In this document: positions 7,195-60,019 of the stretch, piece by piece
Layout: each line of letters starts with the position of its first letter
Position numbering within the stretch: position 1 is the stretch's first letter
Source: Blastocladiella emersonii ATCC 22665
Lineage: Eukaryota > Fungi > Blastocladiomycota
Assembly (NCBI GenBank): GCA_025594325.1
Contig: JANHCV010000006.1
Coordinates: 1,178,001-1,242,000, forward strand
DNA length: 64,000 nt
Reading direction: 5' to 3'
Notes under the pieces: model-generated
Databases searched by the model: none
What the model was told of the DNA's origin: nothing
The model's input: only the letters and a program-made list of their open reading frames with translations
Translations under genes and position numbers: made by a program

Positions 7195-8340
7195 TTGAGC
7201 GACTTGCTGCCCTTGCCTTATCATATCGCTCTGAACATGGGACAGGAATCCGAGGCGCCACCCATGATCGCGCCGTTCAAGCAGTGGCACCCGGCCGCGC
7301 AAGCCGCCGCGGCGCTCGTCGGCGTCCCCGTGGCCGTCTACGCTTACAAGTGCGCCATGATGGTCGCGTTCCAGCACGAGCTGATCTACATGCGCCGGAT
7401 GCCGCCGGGCGCGCGCGGCCGGCCGTTTGAGAGCGCGAAGCCGCACGGCCTCGTTGCGGCGGACGTGATCCTGCCCCGCCTGGGCAAGGACCCGAGTCTC
7501 CACGGGCTCTATGTGAAGCGCAATACGCCGACAAAAGTGCCCGACGTGCTCGTCGTGTACCTCCAGGGCAACGGCGGCAACATCGCGCACCGGTTCCCCA
7601 AGTTCCGCTCGCTCCTTGACGCGGTCCCGCGCGACGTCAGTGCCGCGGTGCTTGCGGTCGGGTACCGCGGGTACGGGACCTCGCGCGGCGCGCCGTCGGA
7701 GCGCGGGCTGATCCGCGACGCGGCGCGGTTTCTCGAGCTGGCGCACGACCCACGCGCGCTGGCCGAGTACGTCCCGCAGCTCGAGCCGGCAGCGGTACCG
7801 CCCGCCGTAGTGCTGTACGGCCACTCGCTCGGCGGCGCTGTCGCGGTTGCTTCCGTGTACCACCACTATCACCACCGGCAACCTGCGTCCCCGAACCACC
7901 ACCGCCACATCCCGCGGGACCCGCTCGCCGGCCTCCCCGCTCTCGCCTCCCCAATCGCCGGCGCGGTCGTCCTCGAGAACACGTTCACGTCGCTGCGCGG
8001 CGTGGTGCAGCACCTGTACCCGTCGCACTCGCCGATCCACCACCTGCACCCGTTCCTGCGGAGCCGGTGGGAGTCGCTGCTGCGGCTGCAGCGGCTGCCG
8101 CGCGACGGCGATCCGACGCGGTGGACGTTCCTGTCGGGGACGCAGGACGAGATGGTCCCGCCGCGGATGATGGAAGAGCTCCGCGCGGCGGTGCCCGAAG
8201 AGCGGGCGACCTGGGTCGCGGTGCCCGGCGGGCTGCACAACTCGACGTGGGAGCACGCGGCGTGGCGCTTGGCATGGAGCGGGATCGTGCGGCGGGCGGT
8301 CGAGGCGAGGGATGCGCGGTGTAGGGGAGAGCTAGAATAG
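7195..8340 (+). CDS. Alpha/beta hydrolase, ABHD13/Bem46-like
   Basis: VVYLQGNGGN, YRGYGTSRGAPSERGL, nucleophile elbow GHSLGGAVA, ENTFTSL, GTQDEMVP, LHN. The start may instead be ATG 7237 or 7264. Confidence 0.85.
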   Translation: MSDLLPLPYHIALNMGQESEAPPMIAPFKQWHPAAQAAAALVGVPVAVYAYKCAMMVAFQHELIYMRRMPPGARGRPFESAKPHGLVAADVILPRLGKDPSLHGLYVKRNTPTKVPDVLVVYLQGNGGNIAHRFPKFRSLLDAVPRDVSAAVLAVGYRGYGTSRGAPSERGLIRDAARFLELAHDPRALAEYVPQLEPAAVPPAVVLYGHSLGGAVAVASVYHHYHHRQPASPNHHRHIPRDPLAGLPALASPIAGAVVLENTFTSLRGVVQHLYPSHSPIHHLHPFLRSRWESLLRLQRLPRDGDPTRWTFLSGTQDEMVPPRMMEELRAAVPEERATWVAVPGGLHNSTWEHAAWRLAWSGIVRRAVEARDARCRGELE

Positions 8341-9802: not shown

Positions 9803-12800
9803 ATGAGCAAAAACACGATCGCCTCGGCCGACATGAAGGGATTGCACACCTTCATCTCGGACATTCGCGCCTGTACGCGCTCTTGCTCGCTGATGATGTG
9901 AAAGTGGAGCCGCCGACGCGCGCTGACGGACGGACGTCGTGTGACTAGGCCGCTCGCGCGACGCCGAGGAGAAGCGCATCAATAAGGAGCTCGGCCACAT
10001 CCGCCAAAAGTTCAAGGGTACGCTCTACCCACCTCCGCACTCGCCACCGCCCAACCTAACCGCGCTCCCGACGTCCAGAGGGCGGCATGTCCGGCTACGA
10101 GCGCAAAAAGTACGTGTGCAAGCTCGTGTACATGTACATTCTCGGGTACCGCATCGACTTCGGACACGTCGAGGCGGCGAACCTGCTGGCGAGCCCAAAG
10201 TACAAGGAGAAGCAGATCGGGTACCTGGCCGTGACGCTGCTGTTCAACGAGAACAGCGACGCGGTGCACCTGGTCGTCAACTCGTTCAAAAAGGACCTGG
10301 ACGCCGACTCGGACGTGGTCAACTGCCTCGTCCTCAACGCCATTGCCAACATTGGCGGCACCCAGCTCGCCGAGACGCTCGGGCCCGACGTGGTCAAGAA
10401 GCTGACGAGCCCCGCTGGCTCGCCCTTCATCAAGAAGAAGGCCGCACTGTGCCTGCTCAAGCTGTACCGCAAGCACCCGTCGACGTTCGTCCCCTCGGAA
10501 TGGGCCGAGCGCGCCGTGGCGCTGCTGACGCACCACGACCTCGGCGTCGTGACGTCGGCGGCGTCGCTGCTCAACCACGTCGTCGCCGAGAACCCGTCGG
10601 CGTGGATCATGGCGCTGCCCAAGACGCTGGACCGGCTGCACCAGATCGTGGTGCAGCGGGCGTACGCGGCGACGGACCTGTACTACAAGATCCCGGTCCC
10701 ATGGCTGCAGATCAAGCTGCTGCGTCTGCTGCAGAACTACGAGCCGCCGCACGCGCCGAGCGAGCGGTCGACGGCGCTCGCGGTGCTGCACGCGATCCTG
10801 GCCGCGACCCAGGACCAGCCCAAGCACCAGCAGCAGCTCAACGCCCTCAACGCCGTCTTCTTCGAGGCCGTGCGCCTGATCCTGCACTGGCAGCTCGAGC
10901 CCCAGCACAACGCGCCGCTCGTCGCCGAGGTCGCCAAGATGCTGGCCCGGTTCATGGGCGCCAAGGACTCGAACGCTCGGTACCTCGCGCTCGAGGTGTA
11001 CGCCATGATGCTCAACGCGGGCGTCCCGATCCCGGGCCTGCACGCGCTCGAGGGCACCATCGTCGCCGCGTGCCGCGACCGCGACAACTCGGTGCGCCAG
11101 CAGGCCCTCGACGTGCTGTACCGCATGGCCGACGCGACCACGGGGCCCGGCATCGTGACAGAGCTGCTGCGGCTGCTGGGCACGACTGAGGCGTCGACGA
11201 AAGAGGTGCTGGTGCTGCGCATCGCGATCCTGGCCGAGAAGTTTGCGCCGTCGTTCGAGTGGTACTTCCACACGCTGTGCGAGGTGCTGCTCAAGGCACC
11301 CGAGTTCACGTCCGACGACGTGTGGCACCGCATCGTGCAGCGGTTTTCGGCGCTCCCCGCCGACAACGCCACCGCCGACATGCTGCGCATGCTGTACGAG
11401 CAGGTCCGGCTGCCGAGCTGCCCCGAGAAGCTCCTGTGCCTGACCATGTACCTGCTGGGCGAGCGCGCCGACGCGCTGTGCCCCGACGACTCGGCAAACG
11501 CGGTTCCTCCGACCGATATCTTCCACGCGCTCTACTACCACTACACGTACCTGGCGCCCGCCGCCAAGGCGCAGGCGCTCACGACGTTTGTCAAGCTCGT
11601 CAACCTGTTCCCGGAAATCAAGCCGCTCGTCGCGCAGGTCCTCTCCGAGCACGCTAACGACCTCGACCTCGAGCTCCAGGAGCGCGCGTGCGAGTACCTT
11701 GCCCTCCTCCGTGCACCCGATCACGTCCTCATCGCCATCTGCGAGCAGATGCCCGCGTACACGGACCGCCAGTCCGCGCTCGAGTCGCGGCTCGCCGAGA
11801 AGGAGGCCAAGAAGAAGGCCGGCGCCGCGGGGTCCACGACGACCGCGCCCCCGTCGCCGACCCACGCCGAGGCCAGCGGCCCGCCGCAGCTCCTCATGGA
11901 CACGATGGGGCAGAGCGCCAAGGCGACGATTCCGCGCGGTGGTGGTGGTGCGAGTCCGTACAGCGCGGGTAGCGGCGGCAGCGGTGGCGGGATCATGGAC
12001 GACCTCCTCGGCATGTCCGCGTCGCCCGGCTACGCGCCCGTGCCCGTCTCCCCGACGCCCGCTGCGCCCGCGGCGAACGCGGCCGAGGCGCAGCAACGCC
12101 TGTTCGCGCGCTTCTTCCACGCGCGCGAGGGCGTCGTGTACCAGGACGCGACGATCCAGATCGGCGCCGTGGTCGACGTCGGTCCCCACCTCGGCCCGGG
12201 CGTGGCCAACGTGGTGCTGTACCTCGGGAACAAGACGGGCGTAGCGCTCGACGCCGTCCAAGTCGACGTGGCGAGCTGCCCCGAAGTCAGCGTGCAGGTG
12301 AGCGACGCGCCGCGGTCGATTGCGCCCGGCACGCAGGAGCGCGTCGGCATCGCGTGCGCGTTCCGCGGCGGCGCGCCGTCGGGCCCCGTGCAGGCGCGCG
12401 TCCGGTTCGCGGCACCCGTCGCGACGCCGACCGAGCTCGTGTTCCGCCTCCCCGCGCTCCTCACGTACTTCTGCGACCCGATCGTCGCCACCGCCGACCA
12501 GTGGGCCGCGCAGTGGGCGAGGCTCGCGGCGGTCGCGCCCGACACGCCCGTCGTGCTGCGGCCCGCGGGCGTAGGCGCGCGGGTCCACCTCGCGTGGCTC
12601 CGCCAGACGCTCGAGGGGATGCGGTGGCAGGCGATCGAGGACCCCGCCGACCCGCGCGTCCTGCGCGCGTGCGCGAAGCTGGTCCTCCCGCCCGAGGCCG
12701 TGGCGGCGGGCGGCGGCGGCGGGCAGTTCTGTCTCCTCGAGGTCCGGTGCAGCGATACCTTCGCCGAGTGCCAGGTCACGGTCCGGTCCGCGCCCACGGC

Positions 12801-57833: not shown

Positions 57834-57839
57834 TATAAA
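57834..57839 (+). promoter_or_regulatory. TATA box of the secreted peptide gene
   Basis: GTATAAAG about 95 nt upstream of ATG 57932. Confidence 0.6.
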
Positions 57840-57898
57840 GAGCGGCCGCGCCCCGCGGCGTCCAAGAGTGATCCGCCAGCAAGTCCCTAAGCGACCTA

Positions 57899-57920
57899 CC
57901 CCACCCCACCCCACCCCACC
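57899..57920. repeat. (CCCCA)n tract; G4-forming on the minus strand
   Basis: cccc-a-cccc-a-cccc-a-cccc-a-cc; the complement is GGGGT x4. Confidence 0.7.
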
Positions 57921-57931
57921 AACTAGACAAG

Positions 57932-58235
57932 ATGCGCGCCTCCAAGATCGTCCTCGCCCTCGCCGTCGTCCTCGGATTCGCCATGAACGGCGTCGCTGCC
58001 GCCGAGGCCTCGACCGAGTCGGCTTCGGTCACTGGTACAGTTCTGGATCCTCGGCTCTCGACCCCAAAGCGTCGCTGACCCTCTTTGCACTCGTTTCCCC
58101 TCAGGTACCGACTACGGTTGCTGGCTCAAGTGCGTGAAGCGCTGCGACGTCAAGTGCGGCAACAACAACAGCTGCTCCAACTCGTGCTACAACGACTGCG
58201 ACCGCATCTGCCAGCGCGACCCCATCCGCCCGTGA
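57932..58235 (+). CDS. Small secreted 8-cysteine peptide (77-aa precursor), one intron
   Basis: Exon 1 encodes the signal peptide MRASKIVLALAVVLGFAMNGVAA. Intron 58035-58104 (GTACAG, branch GCTGAC, CAG). Exon 2 encodes GTDYGCWLKCVKRCDVKCGNNNSCSNSCYNDCDRICQRDPIRP*, with strongly C/G-ending codons. Confidence 0.9.
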
Positions 58236-58439: not shown

Positions 58440-60019
58440 TCACACCGACTCCTTCTTGAGGTCAACCTGCTCGTCGCCCACATCCACAAACGTCTCGGCA
58501 TTCACGCGCGCGAGGGCCGCATCGACCTCGGCGTGCCAGTCAATGTAGCGCGTCATGTAAATCACCTCGCAGACAAAACACGTCGTGAGCCCGGCCGCGA
58601 GCCCCCACCACATGCCCGACAACCCCACCTTGGCGACGAACGTGAGAATCAGCCCGAGCGGGATGCCGAGCAGGTAGTAGGCGCCGAGGTTGAACATGGC
58701 GCCGACCTTCTGCTTGCCGCACCCGCGGATCGCGCCGCCGATGATGCACACGGACGCGTCGGCGAACTGGAACAGCGTGAGGATCGGGATGACGGAGGCG
58801 GCGAGCGCGATCACGTCCGCGTCCGACGTGAAGATGTAGGGCACCTGGTACCGGAACGAGAACAGGAGGACCGAGATGACGAGGCTCGCGGCGAGCCCGA
58901 CCACGATGGACGTGGCCATGGTGTGGCTCGCGGCCTTGGCGTTGCCGGCGCCCAGGAAATTGCCGACACGCGCGCTCGAGACCATGCCGAACCCGTAGAA
59001 GACCGTGATGAGCAGCGACGACGTGTTGATCAGGATCGCCTGCGCCGCGAGCGGCAGCGGGCCCAGGATGCCCGCCATGAGCGCCACGAACTCGAACAAC
59101 CACCATTCCGAACACACCTGGAGCATTCCCGGGACGCCGAGCGCGATGAACGGCTTCCACCCGCGCAGCGCGTCGAGCGACCACGGCGCCCAGAACTGGT
59201 GGCCGTCGACGCGCCACACGTACAGGATCAGCAGGCACATGCCGATCCACTCGCTGACCGTGTTCGCGGCGGCGGTCCCAAAGAACCCGAGCTTGAGCGG
59301 CGAGTCGACAAAGGTGAGAAAGTAGCCGAGCCCGCCGTTGATGGGGATTGTGATGAGCGACACGAATAGCTGCGCGTTCACGACGCCCTGCGCGACCAGG
59401 AACTTGGCTGTACAGTCGCTCACGATCATGGGAAACAGACCGAGCCACAACACGCGAATGTACTGGCCCGCCATGCGCGCGAGGTCGTGGTCCTGGCCCG
59501 CGAGACGGAGCAGCGGCTCGGCGAACCACCAGAGAAACGTGAGCGGGATCGCGATGGTGAAGTTGATGAGGATGGCGCGCTGCAGGTAGATGCCCGGTTG
59601 CCGCGGGTTCTTGGCGCCCGTCACGGCCTGCGACGCGAGCGTGTCGAGCGAGCTCGAGAGACCGAAACAGATCGAGAAGCCGAGGATGTTGGAGAACTAG
59701 CATGGCGGGACAGGTCAGTTGCTGGTCTCCATCGCGCGAGTGCGTGTGAAGCGCGTACCATGACGGCGAGCGTGGCGGCTGCGAGTTCTGTTGCTCCAAG
59801 GTGGCCGATCATGAGCGTAGGCAGCACATTGTTGGCAAACGACAGCGACGAGCCCGCGATGCATGGTATGGACGTGGTGACGAGCGTTTTTGCCTCGGTC
59901 CACGCTTCCTGCGCGGTCGGCAGCGGGATTCGGCCGTGCGAGGGCGTTGGTGCGCGAGGAGCAGCGGCCTCGGCGGCGGGCTCGGAGGTCGAGTGGGTGA
60001 TGGCGTCGCTGGAGGTCAT
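58440..60019 (-). CDS. MATE-family efflux transporter, one intron
   Basis: GHLGATELAAATLA, LDTLASQA, EWWLFE, SARVGNFLGAGN, GAIRGCGKQ, YYLLGIPLG. Intron 59697-59758. TATAAA near 60078-60083 on the minus strand. Confidence 0.93.

Follow-up and report, generated by a model that had tools for sequence, protein, structure and literature searches.

Helical hairpins stapled by symmetric CX3C pairs are known from the plant alpha-hairpinins, which include EcAMP1, Luffin P1, the vicilin-buried peptides, nigellin-1.1 and BWI-2c. These peptides are secreted, and their precursors contain one or several modules that are cut at basic sites. Two cysteine patterns, a 4C motif (C-x3-C-xn-C-x3-C) and a 6C motif (C-x3-C-x3-C-xn-C-x3-C-x3-C), have been described and are common in plants (PMC11591084). 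An initial reading of the locus considered here, made from the DNA letters alone (hereafter the sequence-only reading), took alpha-hairpinins to have two disulfides; this is correct for the 4C form and incomplete for the group, as 6-Cys alpha-hairpinins with three disulfides and the pollen allergen Ole e 6 have also been described (PMC11591084, PMC8198727). Ole e 6 (PF09253; PDB 1ss3), whose function is unknown (PMC8198727), is an acidic, pollen-specific plant protein of two antiparallel helices, a loop of 10 residues and an unstructured tail, with C-x3-C-x3-C on each helix and six cysteines in total. A helical hairpin pinned by CX3C/CX3C disulfides is also found in the small Tim twin-CX3C (PF02953) and CHCH proteins of the mitochondrial intermembrane space, which are chaperones with two disulfides that lack a signal peptide and are oxidised by Mia40. 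Among microbes, the oomycete PcF/SCR toxins are secreted helix-loop-helix cysteine peptides (PcF has six cysteines in another spacing), and sactipeptide hairpins such as thurincin H, which are bacterial RiPPs, carry four thioether rungs.

We analysed a gene in a 64-kb stretch of the genome of the water mould Blastocladiella emersonii ATCC 22665 (the window, by which we mean the whole stretch of DNA examined) that encodes a predicted secreted peptide with a longer array of the same kind. The features of the gene and the positions of its homologs are listed in Table 1. The ATG is the earliest start codon of its frame, and exon 1 encodes MRASK, an 11-residue hydrophobic core, the segment AMNGVAAA with small residues at positions -3 and -1, and an acidic, Ser/Thr-rich spacer that begins EASTESASVT. 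Splicing yields a product of 77 aa with cysteines at residues 40, 44, 48, 52, 58, 62, 66 and 70. The TATA box, signal peptide, acidic spacer and 70-nt intron that had been proposed can all be read directly in the window sequence, the mirror spacing of the eight cysteines in a CX3C array holds in the spliced product, and the two halves differ in charge as had been pointed out, with a net charge of +3 for helix 1 vs -1 for helix 2. The loop between the predicted helices is GNNNS, and no dibasic site was found in the 77-aa precursor.

Table 1. Positions of the features of the peptide gene (numbered within the window), of its paralogs in the B. emersonii genome (contig:position) and of the homologous gene pair in Catenaria anguillulae.
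Feature	Position	Strand	Details
TATA box	57834..57840	+	TATAAAG; 98 nt 5' of the ATG at 57932
Exon 1	57932..58034	+	103 nt; start codon, signal peptide, first part of acidic spacer
Signal peptide	57932-58003	+	residues 1-24; within exon 1
Intron	58035..58104	+	70 nt, phase 1; GTACAG donor, CAG acceptor
Branch site	58075-58079	+	CTGAC; 26 nt 5' of the CAG acceptor of the intron
Exon 2	58105..58235	+	spacer end, eight-Cys hairpin domain, DPIRP tail, stop
Predicted helix 1	58113-58157	+	AlphaFold2 model
Cys array (C40...C70)	58119..58211	+	(C-x3)3-C-x5-(C-x3)3-C
Predicted loop	58158-58166	+	AlphaFold2 model
Predicted helix 2	58167-58211	+	AlphaFold2 model
Stop codon	58233-58235	+	TGA; end of exon 2
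Subfamily A	window gene; C18:1583569; C7:441486, 442910, 445484, 447305, 448276, 490089; C2:671936, 790796, 792014		
Subfamily B	cluster at C7:328-339 kb		extra intron inside first turn; last gap x2
Subfamily C	C18:1581751, C1:5047213		CSWGDC...CxC
Catenaria gene 1	7510-7934 of the examined MCFL01000012.1 stretch	-	one of a gene pair
Catenaria gene 2	10001-10485 of the examined MCFL01000012.1 stretch	+	one of a gene pair

Several lines of evidence indicate that the gene is coding. Its splice signals are canonical, and its architecture recurs in the homologs described below. The whole protein is missing from the list of open reading frames, as the sequence-only reading had stated, and only two fragments of it appear there, one of 48 aa that reads through from exon 1 and one of 33 aa that starts at an internal GTG. 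When the window is translated in six frames, a single 8-Cys motif is found, and none of 100 shuffles contains one; even the 4-Cys half-motif has a mean of 0.08 occurrences per shuffle. Read in the predicted frame, both exons have a GC content of 0.91 at third codon positions (GC3), compared with 0.51 and 0.53 at the first and second positions; the intron has a GC content of 0.59, and the adjoining MatE gene has a GC3 of 0.93. Between the window gene and its nearest paralog, nucleotide identity is 92% in exon 1 and 81% in exon 2 vs 55% in the intron and 60% in the flanks. Because the exons are conserved and the intron and flanks are not, selection appears to have acted on the spliced coding sequence. 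On this comparative evidence, we conclude that this is a genuine protein-coding gene of B. emersonii with a predicted secreted peptide as its product.

The peptide belongs to a family. When the genome was searched with the exon-2 peptide, and then with its matches, we found at least 20 homologous modules in approximately 18 genes. The best match of the exon-2 peptide in its own genome had E=7.9e-15 (C18:1583569), and eight more matches had E<1e-3. Subfamily A is marked by CW, CG, CY, DCD and a DP tail and by the cysteine spacing of the window gene, which carries all of these marks. In subfamily B, the gene at C7:338618-339356 (-) encodes a three-module precursor, in which the modules are joined by DPIRR-EF linkers and each is split by an intron after GCSYQ; dibasic sites are present in this gene and in the genes of Catenaria described below. 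One of the two subfamily C genes (C18:1581751) stands head-to-head with a subfamily A gene (C18:1583569), and the other (C1:5047213) corresponds to GenBank H9P43_001904, the family membership of which was confirmed in the correct frame. All modelled members have a TATA box, a GACAAG-type start context, a signal exon and a phase-1 intron of 62-91 nt in the same codon. The first exons of the paralogs, like that of the window gene, encode MRxxK, a hydrophobic core and VAAA. The eight cysteines are invariant in an alignment of 14 sequences that spans the three subfamilies, and the more basic of the two helices is helix 1 in 10 of 10 members, so that the charge asymmetry is a trait of the family. 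Aligned paralog promoters, in DNA that is otherwise GC-rich, have a TATAAA-type box at the equivalent position in 10 of 10 cases. The 5' leader of the window gene also contains a (CCCCA)4 tract at 57899-57920, between the TATA box and the ATG; it is not a feature of the family, because the aligned leaders of nine other paralogs do not have it.

The gene apparently is unannotated, as had been claimed: its exact product is absent from a collection of 15 billion proteins, and none of the proteins of 42-135 aa returned by the homology searches contained it. Of the proteins in the databases, KAI9179183 ('hypothetical protein H9P43_005845') is the closest, with 78% identity over the full length. It is one of five family genes that have been deposited in GenBank as hypothetical proteins, together with KAI9168360, KAI9151049, H9P43_007685 and H9P43_001904. 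The GenBank models of these five paralogs match the architecture modelled here except for an N-terminal extension of 22 residues in H9P43_007685. This protein (C2:671936) was deposited with 99 aa and begins 22 residues upstream of the conserved MxxxK start of the family; its start codon was likely mis-called. The published genome annotation was produced ab initio (funannotate), with no mention of RNA-seq (Leonard et al. 2022, PMC9730499), and therefore the deposited family models are not transcript evidence. A search of sequencing runs with a 3.5-kb stretch around the gene listed no RNA run, which does not mean that none exists.

These circumstances could suit a silent or decaying copy, one that is intact through recent duplication and is not expressed. 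The family does include such a case: the gene at C7:442910 has its ATG changed to ATA and has lost the splice donor, while its exon 2 frame with all eight cysteines is still open, and by these sequence changes it is a young pseudogene. The window gene, in addition, was not called in the published annotation. However, missing annotation is the rule in this family and not a sign of decay, because only five of the approximately 18 genes are annotated. The window gene has kept its start codon, its splice donor, branch site and acceptor, its TATA box and all eight cysteines, its dS of 0.25 to the nearest paralog amounts to long independent survival, and omega in the signal exon is 0.17. It is therefore very improbable that the gene is silent.

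To determine how far the family extends, we compared a HMMER profile of eleven subfamily A peptides with 1.84 billion representative proteins. The profile matched B. emersonii paralogs and two proteins made of repeated 6-Cys hairpins, and nothing else. One of the two, from the green alga Botryococcus braunii, is a polyprotein with six near-identical tandem repeats of a 6-Cys hairpin; the other, encoded on an ENA metagenome contig, contains five C-x3-C-x3-C-G-x4-C-x3-C-x3-C units behind an N-terminus that resembles those of bacterial lipoproteins. The two proteins look unrelated to each other, and repeated disulfide hairpins seem to have arisen several times. A broader alignment search added a single clear relative from another genus, the Catenaria anguillulae protein BCR44DRAFT_71192 (E=1.1e-7), and the corresponding locus (MCFL01000012.1) carries a head-to-head pair of homologous genes, in which the TATA box, signal exon and intron are again present. 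Each Catenaria precursor consists of a signal peptide, a 4-Cys module, a Lys-Arg site and then a 6-Cys module. The 4-Cys module starts with VDYRC, like subfamily A, and the 6-Cys module can be aligned with subfamily B, of which it lacks the first and the last cysteine.

As far as databases show, then, the family is apparently confined to the Blastocladiomycota. Missing matches in other fungi say little about their true gene content, because even in B. emersonii the majority of the members lack annotation. A search of metagenome contigs with the 8-Cys pattern at the DNA level returned at least 120 loci; those listed all proved after translation and filtering to be (TG)n-type microsatellites (CVCVCV etc.), so that this search is uninformative on absence. 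The peptide of the window gene has no match in Pfam-A at E<=1, and the full-length paralogs gave none either. The suggestion that it might represent a new fungal peptide family can thus be retained in the sense that no Pfam model covers it and that it is seen, as databases show, in the Blastocladiomycota only; it had not gone entirely unrecorded, however, as five paralogs had already been deposited.

AlphaFold2, run on the family alignment, predicts a helix-loop-helix with a mean pLDDT of 83, in agreement with the helical hairpin proposed at the outset. The helices comprise residues 3-17 and 21-35 of the exon-2 peptide and are joined by a turn of 3 residues and followed by a floppy tail. Counted in this peptide, the cysteines mirror each other about the turn, so that the positions of each pair sum to 40 (5+35, 9+31, 13+27 and 17+23). 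Natural variants point to the same pairs. The paralog at C7:441486, an intact gene for 72 aa, has six cysteines and lacks C4 and C5 together with a deletion of 4 residues; the innermost rung of the predicted ladder is thereby lost, which gives the Ole e 6-like pattern C-x3-C-x3-C-x9-C-x3-C-x3-C. The second Catenaria module lacks exactly C1 and C8, and the first keeps the two outer pairs only. As natural variants lose cysteines in symmetric pairs only, they fit a nested ladder with the connectivity C1-C8/C2-C7/C3-C6/C4-C5. The four-disulfide arrangement suggested by the sequence-only reading is thereby backed as a predicted one, with its connectivity deduced from paired cysteine loss.

Structural searches with the model placed it among known helical hairpins. 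The small peptides that match best are alpha-hairpinins, namely the leader peptide of Jug r 2 (Z 5.8, rmsd 1.9 A over 38 residues), VBP-8, Luffin P1, VBP-10, nigellin-1.1 and BWI-2c (Z 4.2); all Z-scores are below 6, and a helical hairpin is a common, generic shape. A shape search of the ESM Atlas likewise returned generic helical hairpins only, a Tim10 cluster among them, and a feature search of the Atlas produced no usable match. On the modelled fold, these matches identify the class of the peptide, not its ancestor.

The presence of BWI-2c among the matches raises the question of whether the peptide could be a protease inhibitor of the alpha-hairpinin type, comparable to the trypsin inhibitors VhTI and BWI-2c, with the inter-helix loop closed by C4-C5 as its reactive site. 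A rigid scaffold would suit a canonical inhibitor, and a Lys or Arg occurs in 6 of 11 subfamily A loops. The loop of the window gene, however, offers neither a basic nor a large hydrophobic candidate for P1, its five residues make it shorter than the loops of known inhibitors, and the structural match is weak and generic. An inhibitory function is accordingly quite unlikely.

The cysteine content itself, 8 of approximately 40 residues, could instead be read as the mark of a structural or surface component (of the cell wall or cyst coat, or an adhesive) or of an extracellular metal or redox buffer that uses the eight thiols. In favor of such a function, the acidic helix 2 is conserved, and the metal-binding vanabins also have helices with a regular ladder of cysteines; the Pfam model Vanabin-2 gave a faint match for the Botryococcus braunii protein only. 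Secreted cysteines at i/i+4 on facing helices, however, are expected to be oxidised rather than available as thiols for binding metals. The peptide also does not have the repeats, the Ser/Thr-rich or GPI signals or the hydrophobic patch that are typical of wall and surface proteins, and its non-Cys residues are poorly conserved. We assign a low probability to a structural or metal-binding function.

With plant alpha-hairpinins, the window gene and its relatives share the predicted helix-loop-helix with its symmetric CX3C pairs, predicted secretion, and precursors with one or several modules, presumably cut at basic sites. The 4C and 6C motifs are nested inside the 8C array of the window gene, and the Catenaria relative contains literal 4C and 6C modules. 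The peptide differs from alpha-hairpinins in having four rungs instead of two or three, a very short loop of 5 residues, a fungal (Blastocladiomycota) origin with no vicilin context, and many acidic family members. No plant alpha-hairpinin was returned by the family profile from the 1.84 billion proteins, and a sequence search of the PDB with the same profile returned none either, apart from a marginal match to Ole e 6. Because these searches looked for homology to the plant families without finding any, we do not file the peptide as a member of the alpha-hairpinins.

Ole e 6 also resembles the peptide: it shares the predicted two antiparallel helices, the short loop, the unstructured tail, the C-x3-C-x3-C on each helix and the acidic character, and 1ss3 is both the best PDB sequence match of the family profile (E=0.0057) and the top Foldseek match. 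It nevertheless has fewer cysteines and a longer loop, and it comes from plant pollen; against the PF09253 threshold of 27.7 bits, the window gene gave no match and one paralog reached 10 bits (E=0.92). The likeness to alpha-hairpinins and to Ole e 6 therefore appears to be structural, as judged from the model, and is not demonstrable homology. Small Tim and CHCH proteins resemble the peptide in the pinned hairpin, whereas the window gene has an ER signal peptide, four predicted disulfides and no Pfam match. The PcF/SCR toxins and thurincin H, which are used against other organisms, resemble its predicted form as microbe-secreted pairs of helices that are cross-linked by three to four rungs; no match to the Pfam model PcF was found for the peptide of the window gene or for its paralogs. 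Neither a survey of alpha-hairpinins (PMC11591084) nor our full-text literature searches turned up the symmetric 8C form. It appears, then, that this is a four-rung, fungal, apparently lineage-specific disulfide-ladder hairpin, with an 8C ladder that we did not find described.

The genomic neighborhood was examined for possible functional partners. A MatE transporter gene (58440-60000, -) lies tail-to-tail with the peptide gene, 200 nt downstream of it. The closest paralogs of this MatE gene (61-63% identity) are two tandem MatE genes at C18:1577674-1580686, beside the other contig-18 peptide genes. MatE genes adjoin family members only at the two contig-18 loci, where they are each other's closest paralogs, and the C7, C2 and C1 loci have no MatE neighbor. 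This distribution suggests that a block holding peptide and MatE genes was duplicated long ago. A gene for a 7TM-like protein is located approximately 1.4 kb upstream of the peptide gene. We considered a receptor-peptide-exporter cassette and rejected it, as the 7TM paralogs are far from other family members and the MatE adjacency is limited to contig 18. The 7TM/peptide/MatE trio is not read as a functional cassette because the old block duplication explains the repeated MatE adjacency; moreover, a MATE exporter would be superfluous for a product that carries a signal peptide.

The 7TM neighbor also bears on the possibility that the peptide is an endogenous signal, i.e. a developmental cue, a zoospore attractant or repellent, or a pheromone-like ligand that is read by a surface receptor, with paralogs providing specificity. 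A small, secreted, multi-copy peptide with a predicted disulfide-stabilised fold would suit this role, and the GPCR and cyclase repertoire of B. emersonii is rich (PMC9730499). However, the 7TM paralogs (C7:930 kb, C4:1201 kb) adjoin no other family member, so that the pairing is not recurrent, and approximately 18 fast-diverging genes with a pseudogene are more typical of defence repertoires. To our knowledge, no sexual cycle is known in B. emersonii, which also argues against this possibility. We regard a signalling role as unlikely, though it deserves some weight.

The evolution of the family, judged from its sequences, is consistent with tandem expansion by birth and death, with 4-, 6- and 8-Cys versions in single- and multi-module precursors. 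In the closest pair, omega is 0.17 in the signal/pro region vs approximately 1.0 at the non-Cys positions of the mature part; the value near 1 rests on approximately 26 substitutions in one pair, and a second pair shows approximately 0.4 throughout. A constant leader combined with a variable toxin is a pattern known from defence and venom peptides. Because of the tandem clusters, the gene death and the constant leader with a variable mature part, we rate defence or competition as the most likely role. It is our best guess, drawn from this evolutionary pattern and from structural analogy to the alpha-hairpinins. The ecology gives no clear pointer, because the species that carry the family include a saprotroph as well as a nematode parasite. 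The idea of a cationic peptide, which the basic first half had prompted, does not generalise: net charge across the family ranges from -4 to +3, and a generic cationic, membrane-active antimicrobial mechanism is thereby ruled out for the family as a whole.

According to the mechanism we propose, the 77-aa precursor would enter the secretory pathway via its cleavable signal peptide. [quoted passage not shown] The hairpin in this oxidised form would be a mini-protein of very high stability that is set free in the medium, and a variable helical surface on the constant scaffold would bind its target, possibly to defend against other microbes or grazers or to compete with them. Taken as a whole, the reading that the gene encodes a secreted ladder-hairpin peptide of a Blastocladiomycota-specific birth-and-death family, acting as an extracellular ligand in defence or competition, is one that we favor with modest confidence, as somewhat better than an even proposition. 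A broader reading is that the Blastocladiomycota independently evolved a modular ladder hairpin with two, three or four rungs, the 8C form of which is undescribed in any organism, and that it is diversifying as an extracellular repertoire of defence or offence, a fungal counterpart of the plant alpha-hairpinins and of animal toxin scaffolds. We put this forward tentatively, as a plausible view that falls a little short of even.

The secreted peptides of early-diverging zoosporic fungi have hardly been explored, and as two-thirds of this family of approximately 18 genes are missing from the deposited annotation, the small secretomes of these fungi are evidently under-called. A four-rung helical hairpin of approximately 35 residues would rank among the most densely cross-linked helical mini-proteins known, and the predicted structure would appeal to peptide engineers who need a hyperstable scaffold. 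In its naturally occurring 4C, 6C and 8C forms, with rungs added at either end, the family offers a system for studying how a disulfide framework grows. Should its members prove to be antimicrobial, they would open a new source of peptides of this type and would represent a convergence with the plant alpha-hairpinins.
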